64,000 nt of DNA, from assembly GCF_963506605.1 (NCBI RefSeq), contig NC_083282.1:38750001-38814000 (forward strand). Direction: 5' to 3'. This stretch comes from Zootoca vivipara. Taxonomy: Eukaryota. Positions 8,299 through 63,067 of this stretch are shown here, piece by piece (the stretch's first letter is position 1; each line of letters opens with the position of its first letter). Below the pieces are notes generated by a model. That model was not told where the DNA came from and did not search any database. It saw nothing but the letters and a program-made list of their open reading frames with translations. The translations under genes were made by a program, and so were the position numbers.

Positions 8299-20842
<12,544 letters not shown>

Positions 20843-22171: not shown

Positions 22172-22351
22172 TCAGCACCCTCCATTCTGACTCTGCTCTG
22201 AATGCACAGATCCATTCTTCAGGAGTTCTTTAGCGACAGGGCTGCTGGGATATAGCCGGGTAAAGCGGGCAAGTGCAAAGATAGGGAAGATGATTCGGTA
22301 GGCATTGTAATGCAGAGTACCAGATTTGTAGAATGCTCCAGCGATGTCACC
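22172..22351 (-). CDS. LSS: LSS-like exon 22 ([30 protein letters not shown]...QNGGC*)
   Basis: cctcag|GGT; TGA at 22174-22172; candidate minus-strand AATAAA at 21376-21371. Confidence 0.92.
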   Translation of the reverse strand, partial: GDIAGAFYKSGTLHYNAYRIIFPIFALARFTRLYPSSPVAKELLKNGSVHSEQSQNGGC

Positions 22352-25300
22352 CTGAGGAGAGGCAAGAGAAATTCCTGAACAACCTACATGCAGTCTTCTG
22401 CCCTGATTTCACGGTGATTAAATTCCATTTGAGAACCCAGTTGTATGATCACTGTAACCTCTTTTAAGAGCAACTGTCACATACAGTACCACCGAGCTTT
22501 TGTTTGGCAAACAAGACTCTGGAAGCAGGAAGCAGAGACCAGAGCCAATTAAAATGCAGGAAAAGCAACTAAAGACATTGTGGCATCTCAGGCCGAATAT
22601 CAAAATGGTTCCATGATTAAAAAAATAAAAGAATCAACTGGCCGTCTACAGCTTTTGAAGGGCACCCCTCTGACCTGCCACATGTATGTAACAGTAGGGC
22701 CAGCTGTGTCCTGTGCTCTGATACCACACAAACTCAATCCCAATGGCACATTTCAATGCCACAGCAGTAACAGGTAGCTGCACTTGGGTGCCTAAGGCAA
22801 CAGAATACTTCCCACAGGAACATCAGAGTGTCCGATTGAGGGCGAATATGGGAAGCACTTGTAAGAGCTCACCTGCCAATGCCACACAGGTGTCCATGTG
22901 TGCCCACAATACATTGCAGCCATCTATGAGAAGCATCTTTATGACCGCAATGATGCCAATGAGAGTACACACTGATCTGGGTCATTCTGTAAGTGAGGGG
23001 TGGATAACCTTCGATCCTCCAAATATTGCTGACCCCCCACACTCTGAGGACTTGTTGGGAAATGCTCTGCGTTCATTCATTCATTTTATGTGTATTTGGA
23101 GGACATGATCCTTTCCATAGGTGGCTGAAATATACTGTTTCTGTCAACCTTGAAATTATATTGCTATGAGGATATTTGATTAAGAAATTAAAAGTTGTAA
23201 CACACCTGAGGCCACTCCCCAATCGATGTCTGTCTGTCAATCAAAACTTGTATTCCTCTTTCCAGAACCCGAACATCAGGATATCTGCAAAGCCACACGA
23301 ATACTGGTCATTCCGTTCTGTTATCAGCACCCAGTTGAGGGCTGGTGGCTGGAGCGAGGGGAAAGCCTGTCAGTTTTCTTCTGGGGAGAAGCTTATATGA
23401 CCACAATTTCTTTTTAAAAGAAAGAAAAAAAACCCTCATGGGTTCCCAGGATTCTCTAGGGAAAGTCATGTGCTTTAAAGGTACACAGCTCACTGCTTTT
23501 GGGTGCTGATAGCTCCATTTCCCATGACTAGCCTGCTTTGGCTAACAGGCCCAGAACAAATTTATGCGAGTGATGCAGTGCACTCATAGTGTATGGATAA
23601 TGGATTTTTTGTGGGAAAGTCTTTGGAGGAAATGGACTTGGGGCAGATCAGCCCAACCAAAGATACTTCCAGAAAGAAGCACCTCTTGTGATGGAGGATT
23701 AGGCTGCATACACACCATAGGTTTAGAGCAAATCACTTCCTGCAAAGAATCCTGGGAACTGCAGCTCTGTGAAGGATAAAGTACAGTTCCCAGGATTCTC
23801 TAGGGAAAGTCATGTGCTTTAAAGGTACACAGCTTACTGCTTTTGGGTGCTGGTAGCTCCATTTCCCATGACTAGCCTGCTTTGGCTAACAGCCCCAGAA
23901 GAAATTTATGCGAGTGATGCAGTGCACTCATAGTGTATGGATAATGTTTTTGGTTTTTTTGTGTGAAAAAGTCTTTGGAGGAAATGGACTTGGGGCAGAT
24001 CAGCCCCCTCTCGCCAAAGCCCCATGAACTTAGAAGCATGGTTCTTTAGCACACCTTAATTGGTTTGTCTAACTGCTGCAGAAACCACTTGGCCAAAAGC
24101 AGACAGAAGCCTTTTCTAAGGTAGGTAACTGCCAGCTTCTGTGCTTACCTAACAGCCATTAGCCCCAACAGAGCCCAAGAGGTTTGGTGGATCTGGGATA
24201 CGGTGTGCTGAATATATTTGCGAAACCTGTAGGATTCAAATTCCTCTCCCCAGCCACCGTCTTCCATTTGCTTGGAGACTAAGAATTCACAGGCTTTGGT
24301 CACTTCCTTGCATGCCTCCCTAGAAAACATGAGAGGAGAAAGAAGGGGAAAAACAGCCCATGAGATGCCTCATTGGGTTTTGTTCCACTGTTGGCCTTGA
24401 CTGCACCCCCCCCCCAAAATTGTGCACACTTACCTGCAGGTAAGACCCACTAAGTTCAGTTGGATTTACTTCTGAGAAAGCATGCATAGGGGCTGGAGCT
24501 GTCAATATTATATGCACATGACTCCCCCGAATTTGATATTTTGGGTGGAGGAGCCTTACGATCTTTCCACTTCACCACCCTGAAGCTAAGCTCCATCAAG
24601 GGCTCCCAGCAGAGCAACATTCATACTAATCTTCTATCCGAAAGGCTGCTTACTCACCCACCACGGTAGATGAATCCCATACATGCAAATGCCTCGAGTC
24701 CAAACCAGGTGCCATATGTGAAGCATACGCCCCATCGCCTGTCAGGGAGGGGAAAACCCATCAGCCGCTGAATGAATGATACAGAGACAAATGACAGACT
24801 ACAACCTTTGAGCATGCCCTTCCATTCACTGTTTCATAGAATCAGAGTTGGAAGGGACCATGAGGGTCATCTAGTCCAACCCCCTTGCAATGCGGGAATC
24901 TTTTGAGTCTCATGTTCCTAGTCAAAGTCAGAATCTCTTATAACTTTTTATTTTATTTTTTTCTTGTTGTACATTTAACTAGATCTAATTTATATAACCA
25001 GTTATTTTACTTCAATCAATAACCTTTATTAGGCATCAGTTGTTTTTTCTTCTTCTTGTACATTTAACTAGATCTAATTTATATAACCAGTTATTTTACT
25101 TACTGGTTGTAGATCTAAGGGTGTGAATTTTCATGACGATTCATGAAGGGATCGGTATGGGATCAGTACACAATGTTACTGACAAAAGGATCCCCATCCC
25201 TCCCCCCCATTTTAAAACACCAGCATGTTTTCCCTCTAAGCCTAATGATAATGTGAAGGTTTGTGCAACTACCTTATGCAGACACATCATTAGAACACTG

Positions 25301-25806
25301 CTCATCTGAATGGTCACAAAATCCTGCCTCAGAACAGGCATAGATTTACTGTTGCCGCTGATGCCTAGATATTGGTACTACATTTTAGGCTGCTGGTTTC
25401 AAATCACTCCTCAGACAGGCTAACATCAGTTATTTGTTGTGAAGAAGACCTCTAACTGCCAACTTAGCTGTCACATGCTGAATTTGCCCATTTCATGCAT
25501 CAGGGTTAAGTCTGATCCGGCTCGCATTGTTCATTTAGGATCTCATTACCTCAAAAAAGAGGCTGCATACTCATCTTTTCTTTCCAGTGCATAGAGTTAG
25601 GCTGTAGCGCACCCCTCCACAGTGGGAAGGCAATTCCGTGCATTCATGAGAAACCCCATTCCTTGCTTGTGTTTTACCCTCCATCCCAAAATAGTTTCAT
25701 ATTTGTAGAACATATCAAAAGAGCAAGCTGCCACCAGTGCCAATGCAGATAAACAGGACTGTGCCTGAGTAAAGGGTCACCTCAAGACACAGGTCAACCA
25801 AACTGA

Positions 25807-25853
<47 letters not shown>

Positions 25854-28800
25854 ACCCGGCCTGAATCTATGCCTTCTGGACAATCTTCTACCAAAACCCC
25901 TTTACCGGGGTTCCCTTCATCCCGCCAGATGAAGGCGGTGATGCACCATTTCACCCCCTAAGAAACAGACCAGACATCCCCAAACTTCGGCCCTCCAGAT
26001 GTTTTGGACTACAATTCCCATCCTCCCTGACCACTGGTTCTGTTAGCTAGGGATCATGGGAGTTGTAGGCCAAAACATCTGAAGGGCCGCAGTTTGGGGA
26101 TGCCTGAAATAGACCCCAAATTCATCTTCAAATTCACCTTAGCCACTGAAAGTTGTGACAATTGCTATGAGAAGACAAAACCACCAAATGGGCCCAATTA
26201 GTCTGCTTCCTGGCCCTGAAAACGGTGGCCGATTATCTCCTCAGCAAGGTCCTCCATACACATTGCCCACTTACCTCAAAGGCAATGCCAATTTTTAGGG
26301 TGGGCAGGATGATCAGCTGCCAACTATGTTGCTGGCTCCCACTCCAGATGGCTTAAATACTCCAGCAGAGGACTGGAGTGAACCCTCAGTATCTCTCTCT
26401 GCTGCTGAAGCTCCACTGTTGGGCCAATTTATATTTTAAAAATTGACAGGCTTTCCCATCATCCCCTCTGGTCAGTTGAGGAAAACAATTGGCCTGCCCC
26501 ACCCAAGTCCCCCGAGGGGTTGCACTGGGCCACAATCATAGTCCGTATCAACATAGGACAGCTGACTGTCAACTACTGTACACTACAAGTGGTCCGCAGC
26601 ACTTCCTCTACTAGGATGACACACCAGCTGAAACAATGGAACAGCGTGTTGCATTAGCTAGTTCTCTCAAACTGCTATGTAGGAAAGACATTCAAAAGGT
26701 GAAGGTTTCCACTGCTCAGTCAGCAAGTCATTCTTTCAGAACGCTATGTATGCATTCAGAAACTCCGCCAATCAGTGCCGCAGTCAAGTTCAGTGTGGGA
26801 TATTTGTAAGCCACTCACCCTAACCAGGAGCCATCAGCTTTCTGCATTTTACGACAAAACTGCAAAGCCTTACTTAGAGTATCACTGGGAAGAAAAACAA
26901 AGGGGTCTTACATTTCAAGCTAAACAGCTTCTGGATGAGAGAATAATTAAGGCAAGCTCCTTGTAACAATGGCATTCAGTAACCTAAAGAAGCCTTCCAC
27001 TTTTTCAGAACTTGGTCCCACCCAAAACATTCATTTTGTGGCCTACTTCTTAATGTTTTAACAACGTTTGTGTTGCTATTGTGACCCGCCTTAGAGGAGG
27101 CTGTGATCCAGTAGTGGTTCCTCCCAGCCTCCCAGGTGATGGCTACTGGTAATTAAGATCAAGAGTGTTCATCATCAGTCTTTGTTTAAACCACCAGCAG
27201 CAACTTTACATAAGTATCACTTCTATGTTGGAAATAACATGTATGCTGTAAGTTACATGTACATATACATTTTCCAGAGGGGTAGCTGTGCTGGTTTGCT
27301 GCAGCAAAAACAACTAAGAGTCTTGTGCCACCTTAAAGCCTAACACATTTTATTGTGGCAAAAGTTTTTTATGGACTGGAGTACCCTTCAGATGTACCGC
27401 GTGGTCATTAGTTGGCAGGTATTTAAGCGGATGGAGGTATATGTATATATTTTAAATAATGACTGGAGTTGCAATCAAATATCAAAAAAATACAGTCTTT
27501 GACAAATTCAACTCCTGAACTCTTAACATGGAATAGTCTATTAGAATATAGAATTCAAGACTATAGAACAGGCATCCCCAAACTTCGGCCCTCCCGATGT
27601 TTTGGACTACAATTCCCATCATCCCTGACCACTGGTCCTCTTAGTTAGGGATCATGGGAGTTGTAGGCCAAAACATCTGGAGGGCCGCAGTTTGGGGATG
27701 CCTGCTATAGAAGATGAATATCATGATGTAACAATAACATCCTTCTCAGCTTCTGAGGATCTCACCCCAGACCTTTACCTGATTTCATCTTCCCGGTGAT
27801 TTGGGAATCTTTTCCCAAAATGTTTCAATCCCTGCATTATGGATGAAGTGCATTCTGTATAGGTGTGGTCTATCATACAGTCAGCTGAAAAACATAAAGT
27901 ATTTTACTTTATGTTTCAAGATGGTTTACAGATTTATAAAATCCTTGAAAATATCCTTTAAAACGGAGCCAAAACCTAGCAGTTTAAACAGCAGGAAGAG
28001 GGAAAAAAACTCTATAAAAGCAACAGCCACCAAAAGCTTATCAGGAAAACAGGCCATGCATTTTGTGCAGAGGACTATCAGCGAGAGCCTTCCTTGTCTA
28101 GATCAGGGGTGGCCAAGCTGCATCCAGAGGGTCACATACAGACCTCAGCCTATTTTTAGAAGCACAGGAAGAGCCAGAAGGGAGATGAAGATGGTGGTGG
28201 AGGTGAAACAGATGGGGCGATGTGAGAGGAAATCCCTTTGCAAGCAAACAGTTGAGAACCCTGCAAGAATTATTGGTCTCTCCCCAAGCAGCCTGCTGGG
28301 CACGGAGCAAAAGAGAGAGAGGAAGATAAAAGGGTGTGGCAAAAGGAGGGAGAGATGGCTCTGGCCACACTCACTGCTGACATGCAGTTCACAGCAGAAT
28401 GCCCTCAAGGGAAAGTGTCCCCCCCCCCTTGAAGGCTGTCATCCTGGGAGAGGTGGCTTCTAAAATAGACCCATGTGGTGTAGCTGAAAACCAATTAACT
28501 TGAACTAGGCCCATAGACTCATTGGCAGCCACTAAACACTACTTTGATGTTTAGACAAGTAGCTTGCTTCGCCCACAAAGGTTGAGTTCTGCAGGTCCAT
28601 GCATAAAGTTAGGAACTCCCAGAACCAGCCTCCACCCCCCCCCCCAATTTTATGAATTTTGCTTCCTTCCTAAAGCCCAGTAAGCACTTGCCCATCTCTG
28701 AGAAGCTGCGTAAGCCCAAATTCACAGCTGTGCATTTATTTATTTCTACCCAGCCACACAAAGCTGTGATTGTGTAAGTAAAATGAGAGTAAGACGTGAG

Positions 28801-31800
28801 TTACTGTGCATTATTGGCTCCCTCCTATCGTCTAGTGCAGGCATCCCCAAACCGCGGCCCTCCAGATGTTTTGGCCTACAACTCCCATGATCCCTAGCTA
28901 ACAGGACCAGTGGTCGGGAAAGATGGGAATTGTAGTCCAAAACATCTGGAGGGCCAAAGTTTGGGGATTCCTGGTCTGGAGGCATGCTGTGCCATTGTGA
29001 GCCAGTCACAGTTTGCAGACCACCTTCAAAGCCAGAGCCAATCTGCAAGGATTTGTAAAGAACCACAGGACACAAACAAGGGACTCTGCACAGCACAGCC
29101 TTGGTACCTTGCTATCCTGCACCGTTTATCTTTATTGGGATGCACTGCCACCCACATAATAGCCAAAAAAGAACATGTGTGATGTGAGGAGACCATTGAT
29201 TTCTAGCTAACTTTGTGTACCTGTTGCTCATTTGGGTTCTGAAATATACTCGGAGTCGAGAGTGAGTTTCATGCTCTTTATTCAGCTCATATTCATCAAG
29301 GAGAAGAAGAGAAGACGAATGGCTCTTTTCCCAAAACCATCTGCTTATATACATTATTTACACAATGGGCCTTGCGTGATTGGCTACTTCAGGGCTACAC
29401 CTGTGGGCCAATTATATTGTGGATTGACTTCTGCCTGCAGCCTGATTGGCTGCTCCTACAGGCCAATCAGGTAGCAGATTCACTTCTGCCAGCCGCCTGA
29501 TTGGCTGCTCCAGCAGGCCAATCAGGTTGCGGATTCACTTCCACCTGGAGTTGGATTGGGTAGCTCCTGCTGATTCTGAATCCTATTGTTCTAGGATTCA
29601 GCTCAGTACATAACAGGTTCCATGTTCAGAGCCACATGGACTGTCCGTATCACGTCATCTTTGTTCTGCCTATTCCAGAAACCAACCACCAGCCTGCCTT
29701 AGAACATCTCTCCTATCAGCACCTGCAGTGGACTCTGACAACGTGAACAATTGCCAAGGTCCTATGGCCAAAACAAACTGCCTTCAAACATGTGACTTCA
29801 GTTCATGGTCTCTAGCCCCAAAACTATGAAATAGGCCTTGCTTGTAAAGATGACCAGAATTCACAAAAGATTCCCATTTAAGTTGTTCTGATATCAAGGC
29901 TGTGTTCTTACCATATAACTCCGTGCAGTTCATTATCTCCAGTAGCCTACTCCCTCGTCTGGTTTCATAAGCAGCAAAACCGCCATCAGAATTTCTCATG
30001 CTCAGAATCTGCAAAAAAGTACAAGTGGGATGGGGGAGGGGGAGAGGGTTTAAGAACAGGCATGGTGTTCCTTGTCCTACTTGCAGAGGCACATGACTGG
30101 TCACTCCTGCACAACCCCACAAGCCACTCCTGTGCCCCTTTCACGCTTGCCTTTTTTTACAAACTAAAAAACCCCCCAAATGTTACAGAGACCCTTGATC
30201 ATTTTAGTTGCCCCTTTCTACCCAAGTGCTTTGATTCCTGCTGTTTCAGGCTTTGCCACAAGCACCAAATGCAATTCAGGCGCCATTCCACCCGGCTACA
30301 ATGCTGTGTAAAATCAGAGCCTGTGCTCTTGACAAACCAATCTCTTTATTTTAAGTGGCGCTCAACAAAAGGAGAGTGGCTCTCTGTACATATATGTAGT
30401 CGTGCCAGTTGGCCCTCTCTCACCATATTAGGCCAATGGAGAACTCGGTGGATGGGGAGATTCTGTTGTTCTAGCAAACCCTAGAAAGTGCCCTTGCTCA
30501 TCACGACTATGATGAGGATTCCAGGACAAAATTTGCTAATTTGCACTATTTCTACCAAATGTGATTTATCTCCAAATTACCAGTGTAGGGAAAGAGATTA
30601 ACTCATTATGTATTTGACTTCAAATTGATTACCGTAAGTAACGTGTAAGGATGCAATAGCTGCTTTCTAAAGAGCAAGATCAACAGTCCATCTGTTCTCA
30701 ACCCTAACGCCCAGTGAGCTTTCGATCCAGCTTACTGGGGGAGATTGCTCTCAGTCCCACTACATTGCATCCCTTTACCTGAGCTTCAGGAACTCAAACT
30801 TTAAGACTGATCATCCTTCACAGAGGATAAAATGCTGCCATAGGGACACTTCCACCAATTCTCTTAGCCTACGGCCCCACAAAACTCAGCACTATTACTG
30901 AATGCTAGATGACTTCAGTCTTCCCACAATAGCTTCCTCCTGCCTGCTTCCCATTTTCTCTTCTGGGCTTTCCCCCTTCTCACCACGTTGACAGCATCAA
31001 AGAGGCGCTGAGGTGCCACATGATCTTCTATGAAGGGGCATTTTTCCTCCAGCAGCATCAGTGTCCTCATGGCCTCAGCAGTGCAGTCAGACACTATCCA
31101 GTCATTCTCTCGAGTGCTGAAGGGGAATCCACCCTGGTAATTGAAGTGAATACATTAGGACTCCATTGGCAGCTGCCAGTGTAGAGGCATCTCCTCCCAA
31201 GCAATGCCCAAGAAAGCAATCAGGGAGTTGATGGGTGATCCATATTTCTTCTTCAGGATTCTAGATTAGATGGGCACTGGCCTAATGCAGCAGGCTCTTC
31301 TCGTGTCCTTACATTCTCAGAATTAACACTTAAAAGCTCTCTTTTTGCTGGCTATGTGTCAGACAGACAGGTCACGATTCTGGATGTACCTTGTTCATCT
31401 GGCGATAATATCTCTGGTAGTTAGGTGGGTTATCTACAACCTGAAAAACAGATTAGCAGCATATTAATAAAAGGCGATCAGATTATATTTGTAACCAGTG
31501 GGAAAGCCAGTGTGGCATAACAGTTTGAGTGTTGGACCTCAGAGACCAGGGTGCTAATCCCCACTGCCTCTCACCCTAGACTTCCTCACAGGGTTGTTGT
31601 GTGGATTCATTAAGGAGGAAGAAAACCATGTATGCCACCTTAAGCTCCTTGGAGAAAAAGGTGGGCTATGCAATAACTAAGAAACAAAACAAAACAAATA
31701 AATTAACTCAGTCAGAAATATGGCCTGTAATTTAGAAGACAGAATGTGGCTACAGCCTGATGCAATGGCAGCACATAGGGTTATGTTCAGTGCTAGTGCT

Positions 31801-40800: not shown

Positions 40801-43800
40801 TATCGGAAGTATATAAACTGCTGTGGGAGTGGGAAACAAAAGATGAAGAAGTGAAATCGGTAATGATACATTGGGCAAAAGATGTGGGCATAATATACAA
40901 TTTGAGGCATGGGAAAAGCTATGGAAGGTGATTTAAAGTTTACGCCATGCTGTACGTTAAAGGAAAACTATATGAAAATGAGGTATAGATGGTATCTAAT
41001 TCCGGTAAAACATGCAAAAATGTACAAAAAAAGTCGAGTATGTGTTGGAGATGTAAAGATAATGAGGGCACATTTTTCCATATGTGGTGGACCTGCAAAT
41101 TAGCAAAAGCGTATTGGGAAATGATATATAATGAATTAAATAAAATGTTTAAAATAACTTTTATTTAAAAAACCAGAGGCTTTTACCGTGTTTCCCCGAA
41201 AATAAGCCATAGTGATAGGCAGTTTAACCTTGTACCGTACTTAATTAAAAAAAAGAAGACATTCCCTGAAAATAAGCCACTGTGGGTTTTTTTTAAAGGA
41301 AGAATAAATATAAGACGGTGTCTTATTTTTGGAGAAACACGGGTAGGTATAACAGGAGAAGATATCCCAAAGGAGAAAAAGGTCTTATTTATGTATGCAA
41401 CGACAGCATTGAGAATGTTATATGCCCAGGGATGAAAGGAAGAAAGAAAGAAAGAAAGAACCCCATCGAAAGAAGAATGAATAATGAAATTAATGGACTA
41501 TGCCGAAATGGCAAAAATGACTGGGAAGATCAGACACCAAGAGGACAAAAGATTTTAAAATGAATGCACTAATTTTGTAGAATATCTGAAGGAGCATTGT
41601 AAACACTTAAAAACATTAGCAGGCTTAGAATAGTGCTGGTGATATAATTAGGGTAAAATTTGTAATAAGGGAAATGAATAAATTAGATAAAGATATAAAG
41701 ATGCAGAAAAGATAAGAGATAATGATAGGAAACCGGGGAGGAGGGTGGGGGGAAGTCTGGGGGTTGAGAACCTCCAAAAGATAATGTTTTGTTGCGTTGA
41801 TATGAATGTAAAATGTAAGCAACAAATTCNNNNNNNNNNNNNNNNNNNNNNNNNNNNNNNNNNNNNNNNNNNNNNNNNNNNNNNNNNNNNNNNNNNNNNN
41901 NNNNNNNNNNNNNNNNNNNNNNNNNNNNNNNNNNNNNNNNNNNNNNNNNNNNNNNNNNNNACCAAAGTATTAAGACCTAAGCTGTAGCACCTAGGCTGAA
42001 AAAATTGAAGTGAAAATAAGCTGTGTTTTCTACCTTGTTTAGACACCTGTAACAACAACTGAATTTAATATATTTGTATATGTTAACTGCCCTGTCACAC
42101 TGTCATTGCCTGGCTCGGCCACACTCCACACACTGGAGGGCAAGTCTAGTAGCAGATGCAGTTTTCAGCTACGTTCAGTGTAGAGTTTCTGAACAGGTTG
42201 GAGCCAAAGGGTCCCCCCTTCATTTCTATATTGGACAGAGTGAATGCCCTGATCATCCTCAAACCATATGCATGTGTTTCTCAGACTGTATCCACGCAGA
42301 AGTAACTACTTCACCTCCCACTGTGCCAATAAACCCTATGTGTGAACGCTACTGCAATAAAAAGGGTATAACTCACCTCATTCTTTGTATTTATGAAATA
42401 ACTAGCTGACCCGGCCACCCGTTGCTGTGGTTCTTTCCTGTGATCCCCCCCACCCTGTCATGATTCATGACGTATCCTGCCCCTCCTCCCTCCACCCCGG
42501 CTCATCCCTGTGTTTCGGTAGGATACCCTTCCCTCTGTTGTCCCTGGGGAGTGTTGGCCTCTCCCCCCTGTATCTCCATACCTTGGCCCCCACCCTCGAA
42601 AAGGAACTGTTTGGTTCTGGGTTCTATTTCCCAGCATGCACTTTTGTCTGAACCCTCTGTTGTTCCTGGGGAGTGTTGGCCCCTACCCCTGGTATCTTCC
42701 TACATTGGCCCCCATCCTTGGAGAAGGAGCTGTCAGTTTCTGGGTTCCATTTCCCAGTATTTACTTTTGTCTGAGCCCTCTGTTGTCCCCTCCCCCCTGT
42801 ATCTCCATACATTGGCCCCTGCACACGCATCATGAACATTTCTATATGTTTAGATTAAGGATCGGGGGTGATGATGTGCCCTGGGACCCAGAGAACTACA
42901 TAAAGAATCCCAACCCGGGGAGGGGGGGTCAAATAGCGAAGCCCCACAGCCCTGTAGCAACAGACAGGCCCAGACAGAAGGAAGAGGGTCATATGGGGCA
43001 CTTGGCGCGGGCCTCCAAATCTAAAGGGGGCCTCGGTCAGCATATTCTCAATCAGTAAAATGGAAGAAGTAACTAAGGGGTTAAAAACAGGGACACATTA
43101 TCTTATCTATCTGGGCTGGGCCTCTGTCTGGCCCTGCAAGGGCCTGGCAACAGAAGGCGCGTTCAGAAGTCACCGGGTTGTTCAGTTCCATAAAAAAACC
43201 CAGGAAGTGGCAAGGGGAAGGTAGGGAATTGTAAATGGGGTGGGAGGTGTGTACTGCAAATATCTGAGGACTTAAACTGGGGAGAGAAAGTGAATGGTTG
43301 TTGTTGTTTTTTTAAAAAAAGACACAGAGGCTTACAATCAGTTGTTTCTCCTAAAATAAGACATACCCATAAAATAAGTCATATTTATTTTTGTCTTGTG
43401 GATTTTTTGGGGGTAGTGGTGCTAAATTGTAAAGTAAAAACCCCTTGCAGTGTAGGGGCCTACATAAATCAAAGGTCGTGCTGCGGTCTGTGGCAAACCC
43501 CTCCTCCGGCAGGCCCCGACCTCCACTTGGCAATGTTGGTTCTTTGGTGGGGTTTTTTTTGGGTGGGGGTAGTGTTGCTAAATGGTAAAGTAAAACCCCT
43601 TGCAGTGTAGGGGCCTACATAAATCAAAGGCCGTGCTGCGGCCTGTGGCAAACCCCTCCCCTCCAGGCAGGCCCCCGACCTCCACTTGGCAATGTTGGTT
43701 CTTTGGTGGGGTTTTTTTGGGGTGGGGGTAGTGTTGCTAAATGGTAAAGTAAAACCCCTTGCAGTGTAGGGGCCTACATAAATCAAAGGCTGTGCTGCGG

Positions 43801-46800
43801 TCTGTGGCAACCCCCCCCCCCAGGCAGGCCCCAACCTCCACTTGGCAATGTTGGTTCTTTGGTGGGGATTTTTTTTGGGGGGGGGGTAGTGGTGCTAAAT
43901 GGTAAAGTAAAGCCCCAAGTGTGTTGCTGTGGGTTATCCCCCTCCCCGGGCCTAGTGGAGGCCTGTCAGCCTGTCAGGGGCCTAAAACAAAGGCCTAGAT
44001 AAAATGGCTGGCTTGGTGTGTTTCAGTTGCTTGGTTGATGATGATGTCATTCGGTTTGTGGGTGTGGCTTAGATTTCTCAGGAAGGGAGGGGGTGGAGGA
44101 GGTTACAACGCCACTTGAGGGCGCTGTTTGAATTGGTGGGAAAGCATTTCTGTACCTGCGCAGGTGTGTGATTTGAGGGATTTTTGCCTCCAACAACGCT
44201 CTAGGAGTGGCCTGGATCGTTGTGTCCAAATTTCAGGACGATCGGTCAAGCGGTTACGGAGAAAAGTGGAACCCCGGATTTCATGATTTTTACATTTTTA
44301 TATATATAGATATTTTATCACTGCATTTGTGCTTTACGGAGTGGTACAAAACGGCCCATGTCCCGACCCTCCCAAGAGTTCCCAATACAGTGGTACCTTG
44401 GGTTAAGAACTTAAATCGTTCTGGAGGTCCGTTCTTAACCTGAAACTGTTCTTAACCTGAGGTACCACTTTAGCTAATGGGGCCGCTGCCGCACAATTTC
44501 TGTTCTCATCCTGAAGCAAAGTTCTTAACCCAAGGTACTATTTCTGGGTTAGCAGAGTCTGTAACCTGAAGCGTCTGTAACCTGAGGTAACACTGTATAA
44601 TTGTTAGAGGAGGAAAAATCAGGAGGGAAGATATGACCAGCATCTTCTGTTTGATCATAGAAATGGTGTCCATTTGCCAATCTATGNNNNNNNNNNNNNN
44701 NNNNNNNNNNNNNNNNNNNNNNNNNNNNNNNNNNNNNNNNNNNNNNNNNNNNNNNNNNNNNNNNNNNNNNNNNNNNNNNNNNNNNNNNNNNNNNNNNNNN
44801 NNNNNNNNNNNNNNNNNNGCTCCCAAATAACTGTACAACATCAGGACTGCCAAGTTTTGCCTGGGCACTACGCTCGAGCAAAATGGATTGATCCAGCCCT
44901 GCCAGAGAGTTCTGCCTTACCTTTTTTGTGGAGATTTATCCGAGCCCGCACTACATTTGGATGGTCAGGCCCAAGTCCAAGGATTCGCATAGCTATATAG
45001 CTGAAGGTTGTGCCTAATACTGTTGACTGTTCTGTAAGATGGCTACCATAAAGAGAGATCAAAGAGCCATTAGAAAATAGACCAGAGTGTTTGGATGTCT
45101 AGAAACCTGTTTGAATTGTTTAGTTTCCATTAACTTAAATTCAAAAACTTCTCTGAGAATTTGTCAGAATACTCCAACAATACCCAGTCAGCTAGCCATT
45201 AGCCAGGCTACCACAGAATACCTACTTTTGTTTTCTATTTCCTTTTTTTAAAGTAATGCCTTAATGGAGGACATGTAGTGCTTTGAAATGTTTCTTTTCA
45301 GGAGACAGCATGGGCTTGAGAGCAGCTCATACAGCCGGAATACCAGATGAAATTCCATTCCAAATAAATAAGAGCTGATCTTGGTTAATGAGAATGTAGA
45401 TTCTGAATTCAGATTCAAAGCTGAGTCAAACCCCGAACTATTTTGTGGTTTGCTATTGGTTTGACAGGATACATTTGGATGGAGGCAACCTGGCTTCCCC
45501 AGACCATTTATCAGTTGTAATACTTCCTACAGGTGGTACTTTTTAAAGGCAAGAGGGATGTCAGAAATCATGTCTTCATTATTGTTGCCTCTCTCCACCC
45601 CTCATGCCACAATTCTATTTTTCTCTGCCACAGCTGGGCAGCTTCAGTACATGCTGAGTCCAGCTTGCATTTTGGTCATCTACCCTGCTGCCCTGTCCGC
45701 ATGGTGAGTATTGCTCACAGTCAAAAGACAGCAGAATGCAGAAGTGATTTAAAGTAGCCTTCATGGGGGAATTGCATCATGGACCAGCCCAAGACAAAGA
45801 TATGCAGAATTAGAGCATCTCTTCCCAGGCCACTCTAAAGAAGCTCACACCCTCCTTGGACTACTCACAAACTCCAGCCACCATCTGGAAGCTGTTGTGA
45901 GAAGATGTAACGCAGGAGCTCTCTCTCGTACTCTTCTGGCAGTGAGATCTTGGCAGCATAGCATGACATCAAAAAACCTGTTTGATTTTTTTTAAAAAAG
46001 ATAACAATGTATAATACTTCACAATCTCAGTTTTGGCTTGATTTGTTTGGATACCGCCTGTTTGGATATCGAAATGTAACTTGTGCTTTTGTACCCCTGG
46101 TAGGTAAAAGGTCAAACATAACAAGATTTAATTGGCTTTTCCAATTGCCAAAGCCATGTTAAAAACTAGGTTATGGGACATAGAGCGCCAGGAACTGACT
46201 TTAGCTGCAAGAAAAACATGTTCCCCTCTTTATTTCCAACTCTCTTGGGCGCAGGAATCTAATTCCAGCTATTTACAATTTCCGTTTAACCCACAAGAAA
46301 GAAGGGCTTTCTCACTAGCTAGGTTCAGTGCTAACCCCTCTAACCTCCTCTGGGGTAGGTTCGCAGGGACTGCTGAAGGAGACAGGATCTGCCCATGAGA
46401 CGCCCATCTGGTTGAAACTTTAGCTCATATAGTCCTTAAATGTATGACGATATCCGCCAGCAATACCTGGACCAACTATGTGTTCCAAAATGGAAACCGG
46501 AGATAGAGGTTATAGGGGGAGAGACCAGGAGCGTACCAAGACTGTAGCTAAGTTCCTCTATTTGATCTTTTGCCGCCAAAGTACACTACAGGATCCTGCC
46601 CCCATTGGAGACCCACAGAGGTGAAATAGATTGCTGGCCTTCTCCCCCTTTTGGCAAGTGACTGTACTGATAAGTTGGCGACGTGATTGTACAGGACTAT
46701 GTATTTTAAATGTTTGAAAATTATGCCAATAAAGGTTTTGATTGATTGATTGACAAGATTTAATTATCTAGCAAGTTTAGGCAAAAGATAATCACTTCTG

Positions 46801-49800
46801 CCCCCTCACTAGAAGGTGCATAATTTCATTCTGGACTATTCAATGTTGGATGCTGCTTACAGTAATTGCCTGGAGCTCTATGCACTTCCCCTGTGTGGTG
46901 AACCACTGAACAACAGGCAGCAGGATTCTCAGTGAACTATCTTCAAATTGCTGGTCCAGGTGGGGATTCAGAGGGGTATTACCCAATCCTATCAGGTGAT
47001 GCCAGAGGGCAAACCTAGGACCTTCTGCATGCAGGGACTGAACTGAATTCAGCTTCTCTCACTTCATTTCAAAGTTTGGTTCACTTTTTTGCATCAGTTT
47101 GTGATTGATTTATTTTTAAGTCTTCATGAAAATTCATCATCTCAATATACACATTTTTGCAAAGCTATTATTATTATTGTTGTTGTTGCTGCTGCTGCTG
47201 TTGTTACTCTAGTATATGGCATTCTACACATTATGTAACTGGAGAAGTGCACTACAAAATTCAGTGAATAGCAAATGTCAATGGATGCCTGTGCTTCAGT
47301 TCTCATACTGTTTCCGAAAGCACTAATAAAGCCTTTACTGCAAACTAAATCAAATTTCTCTCACATCTCTATCTCTACGCAAACCACATTTATTTATTAA
47401 TATTTATTTATATACCACTTCAGTGTAGTAAAGCTTCTAAGTGGTTTACAAGAAATATTAAAATTTTCTGTAAAACAGTTAAAAATAATACAGATTTATT
47501 TTTTTTAAACCATCTGGTCTACCACATCCCCATACAGCTATGTGATGCCAACAATGAGCAATATCCTGTGCAATGGAGTCAATGGATTACCCCCCTGCTT
47601 GGAATGCACTGAAGTGGTATTCTGTTTTGTGAGAGAGGCTAGACTTAGTTTTCCAAAACAGGTGGGAATTGTTTAGTTTAAAATATTCTGAGAATGAAGA
47701 CTATTCCAGAAAGTTGACCAAAGTCAGTCTGAACTGGCTTGAATAAGATAAACACCTCTGCTTACCCAAGAAGAAGAAAACCTATTTAGCTGAATTACAG
47801 TTAAATTCACAGGTGAGATCTCTTTGTTCCTTTCATAGCTAAAGGCTTACAGGTCCATTATTCTAGATTATTCTGACTTCATTGGAAAGCGCGATAGCTT
47901 TTGCTTTGTTGCAGAAAATCCCAAGTTGGATCCTGGGCATAGAGCTGGGGAAACCAAAGAGGGTTGCCAGCAGTTCAGTGTTCAGATAGATGTGCCAGTG
48001 GGATAAGGCAGCTTCCTATGTTATTATGATGAACAGCTTTGTAGAGGCAAAAGAAAGACAACTAATTTAAGCAGTTTCAGGGGTTTCTGAAAATGTTCAC
48101 CTATTTGTGCCTAGCCTATCTGGTAAAAAAAAGAAAAGAAACAGATTTATAGAAAATATACAGGGAGGCCAGTTAATGTATTTGTGGTAAGTCTGTTAGC
48201 GTCCCTGTACCTGGTCCAAGAGCGACGACACCAGAGCACTCCATAGGCCAATGGCCATCTTCCGCTTGCAGGCCAGAGAAGAATTTAATCGCTTTCTGGA
48301 CTGCTTCCTGGGCCGTATTGGCTTTGGGCAAGTCTGGAAAGAACTTACTCTGTAAAACAAAATGGGGGAAGTAAGAGAAATGTACAGAAATTAAAAAGGC
48401 TGGCTACAGTACAAAGTACCGGTATGCATAGTGTTAACTGTCCTGCTACATATAATGCAACTGTTTGGTCATTTTAAAATAAATATAGCCTAGAGACATC
48501 TCTGAGCTCTTAGATCAGTGATCCACAAGGGACCAGAAGATCATGTAGCCCAACTCCCTTTCCACAAGTAAGAACCCAACACTGACTCTGGCTTGCCGAT
48601 GAACTCACTCAGCACAAGCTCAGATAACAATCACAGAGCAGCTACCTTGTAGAAAGTGATATCAAAGTTATGTATTCCAGTATTTCCAGTAGATCGGCAT
48701 ATTCATCTTATTCAGGGTTGTCTGTCTTTCAAGTATAAGATAAGCCTGACCAAGTGGCAGGCAGTTGGACTAGATGACCCTCACGATCCCTTCTACAATC
48801 TATGATTCAATGAAAGCAATAACCAAGCTCCTGTGTTCCTGAGGTGTCAGAAAATGAGAAGCCAAAAGAAAAATGACCCAGCCCTTGGGAATCTGCAGCA
48901 AGCCAAGCCCAAGCCAGCAGTCCTCATGCCCTCTACTCCTTTTGTAGACTTTCAGTGTTGTACCATCTGTTATCATTAAGCCACTTACAATGTCCAGCCC
49001 TAAAGTGTAAGCCTCTAGTGCGTTCTGTTCACGGGCACATTCTTCATTGTCTGCCACGTAGTACCATTTATGCCGCCCTTCCACGGAGCTGAATCGCCAG
49101 CGAGTAAGATCAGTTTTGGGTTCTATTTCATGTGCACCTTTTCTTCTGCGCAGACATCTACCAAAGAACACAGAGGGGGGAGTTTGAAACATGCAGGCAG
49201 ATTTTCAGTTTGTCATCCTGCCACAGGAAATTAATCTGAAACCAATTTTGTGCTCATTCCTGCCAAATGTGAGGGACAGACTTTTCTATTGATTTCAGTG
49301 GGTCTATTCATGACTAATTTGTCCACTGATTTCAGTGAGTCTACTCTGAATATGGCATATTCATACACCACCCATAGATCCTTTGCTTTTTCTAACTAGC
49401 TCATTATGGAAACACTTCCTATCGCTTATCCATCGGCTGCTTCCCAAGAATGGCTCCTCTTCTTTGTGTGCAGGTAAGCCTACCTGACCCTACCTGGCCA
49501 ATCCCCCTGGCACGCCTACCTCTGGCTGGATTGGTCAGCTTACTGAGTGGGCGGCGACTCCAGCCTCAGGTAGCCAGTGCCAGCCTCCAAACTTCTAGAA
49601 CTGCCCTAGGGATCCCAGGGGGGGCTGCACGCGACTGCGCAAAATGCGCCTCCCCTTTATGTTGGATAAGCGGTCATTCTCTCCAACCATATTTTTGTCC
49701 CAGTTGTTCAGAGCACAAAGAGGGATGGTTTATAAGTTTCTTTTATATCCTGCTTCATTCCAATGACAGAACTCATTTTAGGGTTCTTAAGTATGGAAGT

Positions 49801-51030
49801 CACAGATTGATCAACAGGACTTATTGCTGCAATCTCTTGCATACCTTTCCTGGAGGAAAGCCCCAGGGAAACAGTGGTACTTCCTTCCGAGTAAGCCTGC
49901 ATAGGATTGTCCTAGTAGACTAAAGGTAAAGGTAAAGGGACCCCTGACCATTAGGTCCAGTCGTGACCGACTCTGGGGTTGCGCGCTCATCTGGCCGAGG
50001 GAGCCGGCGTATAGCTTCCAGGTCATGTGGCCAGCATGACAAAGCTGCTTCTGGCAAACCAGAGCAGCACATGGAAACGCCGTTTAGCTTCCCGCCATAG
50101 CGGTTCCTATTTATCTACTTGCATTTTGATGTGCTTTCGAACTGCTAGGTTGGCAGGAGCTGGGACCAAGCAACGGGAGCTCACCCCGTCACAGGGATTC
50201 GAACCGCCGACCTTCTGATCAGCAAGCCCCCTAGTAGACTATTCCATGTTTAAAATTTAGGGGTGATTTTCTCATAATTGGCCTATTATACACCTCCACT
50301 ATGGGACCCGGGTGGCGCTGTGGGTTAAACCACTGAGCCTAGGGCAGTTCGAAAGCATGTCAAAATGCAAGTAGATAAATAGGAACCGCTACAGCGGGAA
50401 GGTAAACGGCGTTTCCATGTGCTGCTCTGGTTTGCCAGAAGCGGCTTTGTCATGCTGCCCACATGACCTGGAAGCTATACGCCGGCTCCCTCGGCCAATA
50501 ATGTGAGATGAGCGCGCAGCCCCAGAGTCGGTCACGACTGGACCTAATGGTCAGGGGTCCCTTTACCTTTACCCTTATACACCTCCACTAATTGAACTGT
50601 TTTCGACATCAATAATTGACAAATAATAAGGACCACTGATTCAGTTCCAAAGAGAGTTAATATGTATGTACTGTGCTGCACTCTGCTTTAGTCACTAATT
50701 TATTTGCAGCCAGATATTTTGCCCATCTTCTGCTTATCCCCTTCATTTATCTAATTGGGTTTGCTAAACTTAACATCAACACATCCAGTTTCATGTCATT
50801 TATCAACTGTATTTCTGAATCAAGAAAAGCCAAAATGCTGCCTTTTTATTACTTAAATCATCAGGTTAATTGCCCTTCCCATCTTATTTCTGCAAATGTT
50901 TCCTGTAATAAAGCTTGCTTAATCAATATGAATGATGTCAAGCACTGGCACACTTTGTTATTTTATTTAACCATCATCCTAATTCAAAGCATATAGATTG
51001 CACACGATGTACTTACGTCCCAGCAGACAT
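22172..51030 (-). CDS. LSS: Lanosterol-synthase-like 2,3-oxidosqualene cyclase (divergent LSS paralog), complete 22 coding exons, 748 aa
   Basis: All 22 exons located by hand. The spliced frame is 2247 nt with no internal stop. Exon boundaries follow the human LSS protein, with length changes only in exon 2 (+1 codon), exon 12 (-1 codon) and exon 22 (extended). QW repeats ([30 protein letters not shown]) and DCTAE are present. The symbol denotes the family; orthology to canonical LSS is doubtful. Confidence 0.93.
23206..23284 (-). CDS. LSS: LSS-like exon 21 ([10 protein letters not shown]...GEWPQ)
   Basis: ttgcag|A...CAG|gtgtg; 79 nt. Confidence 0.92.
23442..24005. repeat. ~215-bp direct duplication (23442-23654 and 23786-24005) in LSS-like intron 20
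   Basis: gttcccaggattctctagggaaagtcatgtg...gggcagatcagccc occurs twice. Confidence 0.9.
24149..24319 (-). CDS. LSS: LSS-like exon 20 (EACKEV...[13 protein letters not shown]...LMAVR)
   Basis: ttctag|G...AG|gtaag; 171 nt. Confidence 0.93.
24658..24738 (-). CDS. LSS: LSS-like exon 19 ([26 protein letters not shown])
   Basis: gacag|G...GG|gtgagt; 81 nt. Confidence 0.93.
25808..25855. repeat. (CA)n microsatellite
   Basis: Direct reading. Confidence 0.95.
25971..26106. mobile_element. hAT MITE
   Basis: TIRs; imperfect TSD aaacagac/aaatagac. Confidence 0.8.
26819..26884 (-). CDS. LSS: LSS-like exon 18 ([22 protein letters not shown])
   Basis: cccag|T...GG|gtgagt; 66 nt. Confidence 0.92.
27568..27704. 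mobile_element. hAT MITE
   Basis: TIRs; TSD ctatagaa. Confidence 0.85.
27779..27884 (-). CDS. LSS: LSS-like exon 17 ([14 protein letters not shown]...EDEI)
   Basis: tttcag|CT...AG|gtaaa; 106 nt. Confidence 0.92.
28838..28974. mobile_element. hAT MITE
   Basis: Same ~136-bp family, TIRs. Confidence 0.8.
29912..30008 (-). CDS. LSS: LSS-like exon 16 ([15 protein letters not shown]...NCTELY)
   Basis: ttgcag|ATT...G|gtaag; 97 nt. Confidence 0.92.
30984..31133 (-). CDS. LSS: LSS-like exon 15 with catalytic motif ([22 protein letters not shown]...DAVNV)
   Basis: accag|GGT...GTG|gtgag; 150 nt; DCTAE at 31074-31088. Confidence 0.95.
31390..31440 (-). CDS. LSS: LSS-like exon 14 ([17 protein letters not shown])
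   Basis: ttttcag|GTT...AAG|gtac; 51 nt. Confidence 0.92.
32252..32387. mobile_element. hAT MITE
   Basis: TIRs; TSD atctaggt. Confidence 0.85.
32563..32634 (-). CDS. LSS: LSS-like exon 13 (AGVQNNPDY...LKASQ)
   Basis: ttctag|GCT...CAG|gtaaa; 72 nt. Confidence 0.92.
32990..33043 (-). CDS. LSS: LSS-like exon 12 ([18 protein letters not shown])
   Basis: tatatcag|TTC...GAG|gtacc; 54 nt, one codon shorter than human GTNGSQIWDTAFAIQALLE. Confidence 0.9.
33632..33659 (-). CDS. LSS: LSS-like exon 11 (MGQDGMLIK)
   Basis: ctgcag|G...AAG|gtac; 28 nt. Confidence 0.88.
34212..34309 (-). CDS. LSS: LSS-like exon 10 ([10 protein letters not shown]...YDYLW)
   Basis: ctgtag|ATT...TG|gtaag; 98 nt. Confidence 0.92.
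34592..34710 (-). CDS. LSS: LSS-like exon 9 (TLNLYE...[13 protein letters not shown])
   Basis: ctgcag|CT...CCG|gtagg; 119 nt. Confidence 0.92.
36725..36833 (-). CDS. LSS: LSS-like exon 8 ([12 protein letters not shown]...AAY)
   Basis: cctag|GAG...G|gtgagt; 109 nt. Confidence 0.92.
37731..37866 (-). CDS. LSS: LSS-like exon 7 ([26 protein letters not shown]...SLRQ)
   Basis: aaacag|G...CAG|gcaagg (GC donor); 136 nt. Confidence 0.9.
38643..38739 (-). CDS. LSS: LSS-like exon 6 ([13 protein letters not shown]...FPELW)
   Basis: ttccag|GT...TG|gtatg; 97 nt. Confidence 0.92.
39380..41829 (+). mobile_element. Degenerate L1 LINE ORF2 (RT to CCHC and 3' UTR) in LSS-like intron 5
   Basis: [33 protein letters not shown] and CWRC..H motifs with stops and frameshifts. 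Confidence 0.9.
41186..41343. mobile_element. Tc1/mariner-pogo-type MITE nested in the L1
   Basis: TIR CCGTGTTTCCCCGAAAATAAG/CTTATTTTTGGAGAAACACGG, TA flanks. Confidence 0.8.
41830..41960. other. Assembly gap
   Basis: N run. Confidence 1.
42402..44310 (-). mobile_element. Non-autonomous Helitron with internal minisatellites
   Basis: Minus strand starts A|TCTATATATATAAAA and ends CAGCTAG|T with a short subterminal hairpin; inserted between A and T, no TSD. Confidence 0.75.
43400..43915. repeat. ~160-bp unit tandem repeat (about 3 copies) inside the Helitron
   Basis: gtaaagtaaaaccccttgcagtgtaggggcctacataaatcaaagg...ctccacttggcaatgttggttctttggtgggg repeated. Confidence 0.9.
44388..44596. mobile_element. 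Tigger/pogo-like MITE
   Basis: TA|CAGTGGTACCT...AGGTAACACTG|TA. Confidence 0.75.
44687..44818. other. Assembly gap
   Basis: N run. Confidence 1.
44921..45042 (-). CDS. LSS: LSS-like exon 5 ([11 protein letters not shown]...LHKK)
   Basis: ggtag|C...AAAG|gtaag; 122 nt. Confidence 0.92.
45869..45977 (-). CDS. LSS: LSS-like exon 4 (FLMSCYAAK...QQLPDGGWS)
   Basis: aaacag|GT...TT|gtgagt; 109 nt. Confidence 0.92.
46134..46752 (+). mobile_element. Non-LTR retrotransposon 3' fragment (RTE-X-like)
   Basis: [25 protein letters not shown]; AATAAA then (TTGA)n tail; 13-bp TSD acaagatttaatt. Confidence 0.75.
48211..48349 (-). CDS. LSS: LSS-like exon 3 ([10 protein letters not shown]...[20 protein letters not shown])
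   Basis: ttttacag|AGT...CCAG|gtac; 139 nt. Confidence 0.92.
48989..49157 (-). CDS. LSS: LSS-like exon 2 (CLRRRKG...YTLGLDI)
   Basis: ggtag|ATGT...ATT|gtaagt; TDLTRWR and GRHKW motifs. Confidence 0.92.
49921..50230 (-). mobile_element. Sauria SINE
   Basis: (AAAGGT)n tail; TSD cctagtagacta. Confidence 0.85.
50303..50575 (+). mobile_element. Sauria SINE
   Basis: Head GGGACCCGGGTGGCGCTGTGGGTTAAACC; TSD ttatacacctccacta. Confidence 0.85.
51017..51030 (-). CDS. LSS: LSS-like exon 1 (MSAGT)
   Basis: gaagATGTCTGCTGGGAC|gtaagt; 14 nt, matching human MTEGT. Confidence 0.8.
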
Positions 51031-54705: not shown

Positions 54706-55189
54706 GTTGTTGTTTAGTCGTTTAGTCGTGTCCGACTCTTCGTGACCCCATGGACCATAGCACGCCAGGCACTCCTGTCTTGCACTGCCTCCCGTAGTTT
54801 GGTCAAACTCATGTTCGTAGCTTCGAGAACACTGTCCAACCATCTTGTCCTCTGTCGTCCCCTTCTCCTAGTGCCCTCAATCTTTCCCAACATCAGGGTC
54901 TTTTCCAAGGATTCTTCTCTTCTCATGAGGTGGCCAAAGTATTGGAGCCTCAGCTTCACGATCTGTCCTTCCAGGGAGCACTCAGGGCTGATTTCCTTAA
55001 GAATTGATAGGTTTGATCTTCTAGCAGTCCATGGGACTCTCAAGAGTCTCCTCCAGCACCATAATTCAAAAGCATCAATTCTTCGGCGATCAGCCTTCTT
55101 TATGGTCCAGCTCTCACTTCCATACATCACTACTGGGAAAACCATAGCTTTAACTATACGGACCTTTGTCGGCAAGGTGATGTCTCTGC
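54706..55189 (-). mobile_element. BovB (RTE) LINE, 5'-truncated
   Basis: Intact 153-aa C-terminal frame; 12-bp TSD tagtaatttcat (54694-54705 and 55190-55201). Confidence 0.92.
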
Positions 55190-56920: not shown

Positions 56921-57418
56921 GTTTAGAACCAGAAAGTTGTTGACAACAGAGAGACAAGCATCAAGCCAACTGAAAGTATCAAATGGAGCTACTGAAAGAG
57001 CAAGATTTTTTACTTTGGTACAGAACCATATAAAAGGATTGCCTGTCCTTTAGTTATATGGATCCCAGATCATGTAAAGCATTAAAGTTCACAGATAGTA
57101 CCTAAACGGGCCCCAAAGCACAGTGATAGTCAGTGCAACAGATGCAAAGAAGCTATATTTGCATTTTCCCATCCGTAAAAAGGCACACAGCTGCCTTCTA
57201 CACCAAGTGTTGCTTCAGAGGTTTCCGTAAGGGCAGATGCACACAGACCACCTGGCATTACCCAAGCCTAGAAGTTACAAAAGCACGAGTAAGTGTAGCA
57301 CAGCAACAACATTCAAAAAAGGTAGAGACCATCCTCAGTTCTTACCTTCCTTTCCTTTTGTGTGATGTCTTTTATCCAGACAGGGGCTGCCCTAACGGCT
57401 GATCTTTGAAAGTCATTC

Positions 57419-63067
<5,649 letters not shown>

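Follow-up and report, generated by a model that had tools for sequence, protein, structure and literature searches.

Textbook animal sterol biochemistry knows one oxidosqualene cyclase (OSC), lanosterol synthase (LSS), and the locus described here raises the question whether squamate reptiles, a group of over 11,000 species, possess a second one which makes something else. It lies in a stretch of 64,000 nt of the genome of Zootoca vivipara (RefSeq assembly GCF_963506605.1, contig NC_083282.1, positions 38,750,001–38,814,000; "the window" hereafter, with positions counted from its first nucleotide), where a first-pass annotation, made from the letters alone, had proposed a cyclase gene with a remodeled active site. 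The gene is almost certainly a real, constrained paralog of LSS; the reading that in our view explains it best, with a probability of roughly 0.6, is that it belongs to a squamate-specific OSC family which would have arisen by duplication of LSS, lies on another chromosome than LSS, was tandemly amplified in lacertids, and makes a non-lanosterol triterpenoid. Lizards, amphisbaenians, and snakes have conserved this second cyclase alongside LSS; it has an intact catalytic machinery, and the channel, the B-ring wall, and the C-terminal pocket strand have been rewritten. If the product is indeed new, the family would represent an unrecognized branch of vertebrate lipid metabolism and would provide enzymologists with a natural, deeply sampled "mutant series" of a human-type OSC.

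A Complete Cyclase Gene

TBLASTN with OSCs as queries revealed a full set of cyclase-like segments, all of them on the minus strand (22.2–49.2 kb), and nothing of the kind elsewhere in the window. Splice-aware modeling, in which GT/GC..AG pairs preserving the frame and best fitting the guide proteins were chosen for each junction (a 28-nt micro-exon and the exon adjoining it were read directly, and exon 1 was taken from the N-termini of lacertid RefSeq models), exactly reproduced the complete, stop-free 22-exon gene of the first-pass annotation. It starts with the ATG at 51030, ends with the stop codon at 22174-22172, and comprises 2,247 nt encoding 748 amino acids with no internal stop (Table 1). 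Every one of the 21 introns has an AG acceptor; 20 donors are GT and one, that of intron 7 (after 37731), is GC. The N-terminus, MSAGTCLRRRKG, is identical in the Zootoca RefSeq models P0388 and P0389; an alternative in-frame ATG at 49192, within intron 1 and 5′ of exon 2, would lead to a form of 755 amino acids and is the start of an older Zootoca model (XP_034959520.1).

Two runs of N (41830-41960 and 44687-44818) are present, both inside intron 5, the nearer one beginning about 100 nt beyond the donor of exon 5. Because exons 5 and 6 join in frame (..HKKG/GALGIP..), and because the model aligns over 748 columns without any indel to the full-length orthologs of Lacerta agilis and Podarcis, which come from independent assemblies, the comparison indicates that the gaps do not conceal a coding exon. 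Between them (43408-43916) lie about three tandem units of ~155 bp which are 92–94% identical; this repeat is a likely reason for the gaps. Public Zootoca models of the locus are fragments of 201–512 amino acids, or a LOW QUALITY model of 671 amino acids, and the window protein is 100% identical to the partial RefSeq models over exons 1–5 and 12–22; in terms of annotation, a complete 748-residue gene is supported by the window where the public Zootoca models are fragmentary.

Exon 20 matches Pfam PF13243 (E = 7.5e-13), and the orthologs carry both PF13243 and PF13249; the catalytic acid motif, (V/I)xDCTAE with Asp455, is present as VSDCTAE in exon 15. The AlphaFold model of the L. agilis ortholog P0393 (93.7% identical to the window protein) has a predicted local distance difference test (pLDDT) score of 87. 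Compared by Foldseek with human OSC (1W6K/1W6J), it gives template modeling (TM) scores of 0.94/0.97 at a root-mean-square deviation of 2.3 Å, and with squalene-hopene cyclase (SHC) of 0.73/0.87; judged from this model, the double α/α-barrel fold of human OSC and SHC is kept. Model confidence falls in the channel loop 501–530 and around 690–700, that is, in rewritten regions.

A Paralog Beside Canonical LSS

As the first-pass annotation had supposed, the gene is a true paralog and not the sole LSS of the animal: the canonical LSS of Zootoca, Podarcis, Lacerta, and Rhineura is located on a different chromosome-sized contig, the canonical LSS and the LSS-like models of Zootoca being on separate contigs of 135.7 Mb and 96.1 Mb. 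The window protein shares 58.9% identity with P0344, the canonical LSS of Zootoca, and 56–60% with any canonical vertebrate LSS, fish to mammal; the canonical enzymes of other carriers of the paralog are P0409 (Lacerta), P0410 (Podarcis muralis), and P0408 (Rhineura). Other canonical reptile LSS do not have the replacements seen in the window protein.

Family members were collected by profile searches seeded with the exons and a partial rattlesnake protein, followed by cluster look-ups. The novelty ascribed to the gene stands in part: RefSeq already names "lanosterol synthase-like" proteins in at least 15 squamates, but under this uninformative name their biology appears undescribed, and no published account of a second OSC or LSS duplicate in squamates or any vertebrate was found in the searchable literature. 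Lizard members are from Podarcis lilfordi, P. muralis, P. raffonei (two genes), L. agilis (three proteins), Z. vivipara (fragments), and Sceloporus undulatus; beyond lizards, the amphisbaenian Rhineura floridana and at least nine snakes, from Candoia to Crotalus and Pseudonaja, encode the protein (examples are XP_033007922.1 of L. agilis, XP_028589200.2 of P. muralis, XP_061489113.1 of R. floridana, XP_039175936.1 of Crotalus tigris, and XP_063155921.1 of Candoia aspera). Identity of the window protein to these is 90–94% for the lacertid models, 84.1% for Rhineura, and 73–75% for the snakes. Among the matches listed, the paralog occurs in squamates only; none from geckos, skinks/cordylids, anguimorphs, Anolis, or tuatara is among the best 120 matches, which are too limited to mean absence.

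A maximum likelihood tree of 45 sequences (LG+C20+F+G4 with posterior mean site frequencies, PMSF) unites the paralogs in a clade with 100/100 support and a stem 0.56 substitutions per site long, as sister to all canonical squamate LSS (85/86) and within Sauropsida (96/91). With a separate clade and a canonical LSS in the same species, orthology to the single-copy vertebrate sterol LSS does not hold. The subgroups of the clade, that is, Sceloporus, the snakes, and Rhineura plus lacertids, agree with the species tree; at least three copy lineages of lacertids predate the split of Podarcis and Lacerta, and the window copy falls together with copies a and c of Lacerta and copy b of P. raffonei. 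The tree places the duplication on the squamate stem, an origin which the sequences favor without settling its timing: in approximately unbiased (AU) tests, a later duplication, at the base of the group uniting lacertoids and toxicoferans, was not rejected (p = 0.26), nor was one predating the sauropsid crown (p = 0.19).

Not every protein of similar name belongs to the family. Those called "lanosterol synthase-like" in the turtles Chrysemys and Mauremys carry the residues of canonical LSS and fall among the LSS of turtles. A divergent protein of that name from the side-necked turtle Emydura macquarii (P0373; branch length 0.24) also groups with turtle LSS and has pocket changes of its own (W230Y, C233S, Y237H, P337S, I524T, F696K, N697T, I702N, and Y704V); it may stem from a separate duplication, may be decaying, or may reflect an error of the gene model. 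Ensembl/GenBank models of the elapids Naja, Pseudonaja, Laticauda, and Ophiophagus (P0349/P0435/P0436/P0342) form a separate 90% cluster with 63–69% identity to the window protein; since one of them, Pseudonaja_b, groups tightly with the RefSeq paralog of Pseudonaja, alternative or erroneous modeling is more probable than a second gene in snakes.

Constraint Rather Than Decay

The view that the open frame reflects constraint rather than decay is borne out by the protein alignments, from which constraint was judged. Frames are intact in 16 other full-length genes, from lacertids to snakes, encoding 748–753 amino acids; across the 17 full-length paralogs 432 of 748 columns (58%) are invariant, the acid motif is found in 18 of 18 proteins, and 43 replacements are fixed in the clade (see below). 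That frames stayed intact while the lineages evolved separately for more than 100 million years is, by this comparison, incompatible with decay. The window copy itself has no stop, no frameshift, and no lost splice site, and a spliced contig is present. Following the burst on its stem, the clade has evolved at approximately 1.5 to 2.5 times the rate of canonical LSS: identity between lacertid and viper is 73.8% for the paralog (window–Crotalus) versus 82.9% for the canonical enzyme (Zootoca–Protobothrops), between lacertid and Rhineura 84.1% versus 89.0%, and within lacertids 90–94% versus 96.8%.

Residues Kept and Replaced

Human numbering was derived from exon-wise alignment to the 1W6K chain, and conservation from 78, then 109 canonical LSS ranging from sea urchin to mammals; all residue calls of the first-pass annotation hold in this comparison. 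V453, D455, C456, C533, W230, H232, W387, F444, Y503, W581, Y587, F696, Y704, and Y707 are kept in the window protein, which means that the H232/Y503 deprotonation dyad and the cation stabilizers F444, W387, W581, and F696 of LSS proper are present. Among the paralogs D455, T457, A458, E459, and W387 are found in 18/18, C456 in 17/18, C533, W581, and Y587 in 17/17, and H232 and Y503 in 16/17.

The changes noted at first, Y98C, W192L, C233A, Y237T, I335S, G336S, C449N, F521Y, I524C, and N697Y, are joined by G99S, P101V, L102V, F103A, V236I, S339C, G450D, T502A, G522A, Y528H, C700G, A701T, I702L, and S703H, and in the Q379-N382 loop K-F-I replaces Q-G-T-N, making it one residue shorter (KFIGSQ vs QGTNGSQ). 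Y98, W192, C233, V236, Y237, F521, I524, I702, N697, and the G380-T381-N382 loop, all replaced or shortened, are invariant in 102–109 of the 109 canonical LSS; Y98 is found in every one of these and is Cys in every squamate paralog. Sites at least 97% conserved in canonical LSS number 321, of which 89 (28%) differ in the window protein; at 43 of these the paralogs share another residue, itself at least 80% conserved, and these clade-fixed replacements, which extend over lacertids, amphisbaenians, snakes, and an iguanian, read as the signature of an altered but maintained function. The window protein carries the signature of the clade, which is C98, L192, A233, S335/S336, N449, Y521, A522, C524, H528, Y697, G700, T701, L702, H703, and the loop deletion. 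Positions 237, 338, 381, and 382 differ among copies and lineages, F381 and I382 being found in the window copy only.

As read from the alignment, the part of the pocket that is retained is the chemistry, namely the acid, the cation-π residues, and the base; replacements fall in the constriction of the channel and at the cavity's tail end (192, 233, 236, 237, 521, 522, 524, and 528). Besides the channel, the Tyr98 wall and its neighbors, the 380–382 loop, and the 697–703 strand are replaced. Tyr98 is said, in the 2004 work of Thoma et al., to enforce the boat conformation of the B-ring, and the 380–382 loop adjoins the position reported to separate lanosterol from cycloartenol synthases (CAS1 Y410/LSS T381).

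The proposal that the changes are concentrated in the pocket had to be abandoned as stated. With the ligand contacts of 1W6K as pocket list (Table 3 of the docking paper PMC8911567), 6 of 16 conserved contacts are changed in the window protein versus 83 of 305 other conserved sites (Fisher p = 0.26; p = 0.20 if six further residues attributed to Thoma 2004 are included); a marginal excess is seen solely for clade-fixed changes (5/16 versus 38/305, p = 0.048). The protein has thus changed throughout, with the pocket at most mildly over-represented.

Transcription

Transcription is documented by a spliced RNA contig from one public run of the organism (X2, the type of which was guessed to be RNA); the read evidence covers exons 17–22. 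The contig is 428 nt long with a depth of 12, has no mismatch to the window, and joins four exons; its junctions, 23284/24149, 24319/24658, and 24738/26819, are those of introns 20, 19, and 18, with GT..AG on the minus strand, and a second X2 contig covers exon 17. The gene is transcribed and spliced as predicted, its level being low or its tissues restricted, since hardly any of the reads sampled (~6%) from two deep RNA-seq runs, X8 and X9, fell on exons, which is no evidence of silence; the deep pile-ups in X8 and X9 are intronic repeats. Short interspersed repeats in introns 17 and 18 (24786-24984, 25980-26178, and 27572-27770) gather hundreds of RNA reads with many variants, many of them running into unrelated sequence; this coverage is due to copies of the repeats throughout the genome and not to expression of the cyclase.

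What the Paralog Might Make

According to the preferred reading, LSS would have been duplicated and the second copy would have come to lie on another chromosome, beside a TTC22-like gene; a single remodeling of its substrate channel and folding template would have taken place early in the history of squamates, with conservation ever since, and further tandem duplication would have followed in lacertid lizards. The protein is quite probably an active cyclase, judged from the residues it retains, and would start the epoxide-triggered polyene cyclization of 2,3-oxidosqualene, 2,3;22,23-dioxidosqualene, or a related epoxy-isoprenoid; dioxidosqualene is considered as an alternative substrate because the tail pocket is more polar. 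If folding of the substrate or termination of the reaction differs from that in LSS, a non-lanosterol triterpenoid outside of bulk sterol synthesis would result, and on balance the replacements speak for a main product other than lanosterol, or for a different substrate.

Several points weigh against a new product. H232, Y503, and F696, which are thought to steer the late protosteryl steps, are unchanged, and a lanosterol-like product may result; pocket sites show no significant excess of changes over other conserved sites, so a large share of the divergence may have nothing to do with catalysis. To these can be added the scarcity of exon reads in X8 and X9, and 10 private changes of the window copy (including V381F and M382I) at sites invariant in the other 16 paralogs, which is the top of the range of 0–10 and could reflect mild relaxation of this tandem copy.

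One might also think of a subfunctionalized isozyme, still a producer of lanosterol (or 24,25-epoxylanosterol) and distinct from LSS only in its tissue, regulation, kinetics, or membrane/channel access. Its acid, cation-π, and base set is whole (D455, C456, C533, W387, F444, W581, F696, H232, and Y503), and many of the replacements lie along the entry channel, not in the ring-forming cavity (contact list of PMC8911567), which together with the non-significant pocket enrichment would suit such an enzyme. We nevertheless regard an isozyme as unlikely: Tyr98, without exception in canonical LSS, is Cys in all paralogs, the 380–382 loop is shortened and replaced, residues 697–703 are rewritten, and a burst of 0.56 substitutions per site followed by conservation is unlike simple regulatory subfunctionalization.

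Still less is to be said for a non-catalytic derivative, that is, a sterol- or triterpene-binding or regulatory protein which has kept the fold and lost cyclase activity. Loss of 89 of the 321 near-invariant LSS positions, low model confidence in the 501–530 channel loop and around 690–700, and low expression would fit such a protein; without catalysis, however, it is difficult to account for the DCTAE motif and its Cys partners, which 17–18 of 18 paralogs have retained for more than 100 million years. Finally, the copy might be decaying as an unprocessed pseudogene, or the assembly might have fused two tandem copies across the N gaps. Either of these, which is suggested by two gaps inside a gene of a tandemly duplicated locus, by fragmentary or LOW QUALITY Zootoca models, and by private changes slightly above those of most copies, is very improbable in view of 2,247 nt without stop or frameshift, canonical sites at all 21 introns, 16 intact full-length orthologs in other species, a spliced RNA contig identical to the window, the same nearest lacertid copy (Lacerta_a) on both sides of the exon 5/6 junction in segment-wise identities, and a Zootoca model of 444 amino acids which spans that junction with 100% and 99% identity (possibly from the same assembly and, if so, not independent).

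The preferred reading of a squamate OSC with a product of its own can be taken further, to a dedicated and ancient lineage with tandem arrays in lacertids and copy variation at the product-steering positions 237, 338, 381, and 382, making non-sterol triterpenoids or unusual protosterols/epoxy-sterols; this extension is tentative, the odds being somewhat against it. Such products might possibly serve as skin-barrier lipids or in chemical signaling or defense. The femoral gland, named at first as a plausible outlet, has lost weight because snakes, which are without femoral glands, carry the gene. Known putative lizard pheromones are sterols, squalene, and other compounds, with no cyclic non-sterol triterpene named (PMC7062908).

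The Locus and Its Neighborhood

Tail-to-tail with the cyclase, on its 3′ side, lies a plus-strand multi-exon gene (8224-20842; large open reading frames 8224-9120, 17894-18199, and 20324-20842) for a tetratricopeptide repeat (TPR) protein, whose best language-model look-alikes are TTC22 clusters (ESM-Atlas score 0.93), its Pfam TPR matches being below threshold. Human TTC22 adjoins DHCR24, and the squamate paralog may thus sit in another sterol-gene neighborhood. A flank segment in this TTC22-like gene is repeated in the window (Table 1) with a period of ~48.4 kb, which we take as the size of a tandem unit; because of this repetition, a further cyclase copy should be present just past the upper end of the window (>64000). 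Several Zootoca "lanosterol synthase-like" models on one contig agree with a tandem array.

The part of the first flank copy that has no counterpart in the second, 11741-16371, holds a retroelement insertion. Retroelement reading frames at 13857-14564 and 54714-55175, both on the minus strand, belong to the same element, the two copies matching at 96.5% over 486 nt, and the reverse-transcriptase fragment in intron 5 (39544-40239, plus strand) matches Pfam RVT_1 with E = 7e-18. Just before the second duplication unit, a GC-rich island (56000-57000; GC 0.58–0.63 versus ~0.43 around) is found; it may be a CpG-island promoter belonging either to the truncated TTC22-like copy or to a different gene.

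Table 1. Exons of the cyclase gene and other features of the locus (window coordinates; residues in human LSS numbering)
Feature	Position	Strand	Remarks
Exon 1	51017-51030	-	ATG TCT GCT GGG AC, followed by GTAAGT donor; encodes MSAGT together with exon 2
Exon 2	48989-49157	-	coding
Exon 3	48211-48349	-	Y98C; human counterpart HWTGDYGGPLF; aligned to 1W6K residues 62-103
Exon 4	45869-45977	-	coding
Exon 5	44921-45042	-	coding; precedes gap-bearing intron
Intron 5	38740-44920	-	both assembly gaps; long interspersed nuclear element (LINE) reverse-transcriptase fragment; ~155-bp tandem repeat
Exon 6	38643-38739	-	W192L
Exon 7	37731-37866	-	W230, H232 kept; C233A, V236I, Y237T; followed by the sole GC donor (cagGCAAGG)
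Exon 8	36725-36833	-	coding
Exon 9	34592-34710	-	I335S, G336S; P337 kept
Exon 10	34212-34309	-	I338 kept; S339C
Exon 11	33632-33659	-	28-nt micro-exon, MGQDGMLIK
Exon 12	32990-33043	-	FIGSQTWD..; one residue shorter than canonical GTNGSQ.WD; W387 kept
Exon 13	32563-32634	-	coding
Exon 14	31390-31440	-	coding
Exon 15	30984-31133	-	F444 and VSDCTAE acid motif (V453, D455, C456) kept; C449N, G450D
Exon 16	29912-30008	-	Y503 kept; T502A, F521Y
Exon 17	27779-27884	-	G522A, I524C, Y528H; C533 kept; aligned to 1W6K residues 523-556
Exon 18	26819-26884	-	coding; joined to 24738 in the spliced X2 contig
Exon 19	24658-24738	-	W581, Y587 kept; within spliced X2 contig
Exon 20	24149-24319	-	QW-type repeat, Pfam SQHop_cyclase_C; within spliced X2 contig
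Exon 21	23206-23284	-	coding; within spliced X2 contig
Exon 22	22172-22351	-	stop codon; F696, Y704 kept; N697Y, C700G, A701T, I702L, S703H; aligned to 1W6K residues 691-728
Flank segment in TTC22-like gene	9000-19198		3′ flank of cyclase; recurs at 57419-63067 with 94-97% identity
Second flank copy	57419-63067		starts next tandem unit; without counterpart of 11741-16371

Comparison with Known Systems

The closest relative is vertebrate LSS, as represented by the human structures 1W6K and 1W6J, with which the paralog shares ~58% identity over its full length, VSDCTAE, C456/C533, H232/Y503, W387, F444, W581, F696, and Y704, and an exon-by-exon layout matching the guide proteins. It differs in forming a separate clade which coexists with canonical LSS on another chromosome, and in Y98C, W192L, C233A, a variable position 237 in place of Tyr, F521Y, I524C, N697Y, and a loop shorter by one residue.

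The plant OSC radiations (cycloartenol, β-amyrin, and lupeol synthases; AoPDS/AoCAS, PMC10246894) are similar in that tandem duplication was often followed by remodeling of the pocket, which redirected cyclization. Few residues decide the product in plant OSCs, and enzymes of plants and fungi become protostadienol synthases by a change at the equivalent of human F696 (PMC10246894); in the squamate paralog, in contrast, the F696 equivalent is unchanged. The plant enzyme TwOSC1 (8J5Z) is 32% identical to the paralog, and the squamate clade is nested within vertebrate LSS, without descent from plant-type enzymes.

To our knowledge, the only animal case of neofunctionalized LSS duplicates described so far is that of a pair of enzymes in sea cucumbers. 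The parkeol and lanostadienol synthases of these animals are tandem, neofunctionalized LSS duplicates which feed saponin metabolism, and a single cavity residue (444, within 5 Å of the product) redirects these LSS-derived OSCs to parkeol or lanostadienol (PMC9236903). Derivation from LSS by duplication and the tandem arrangement are common to both systems; however, the sea cucumber enzymes differ at position 444 and the animals have lost LSS, whereas squamates keep F444 as well as a canonical LSS, and at least 12 cavity/channel residues differ. Should the squamate family indeed be a dedicated lineage, vertebrates would have a specialized triterpene pathway comparable to the ones known from plants and sea cucumbers.

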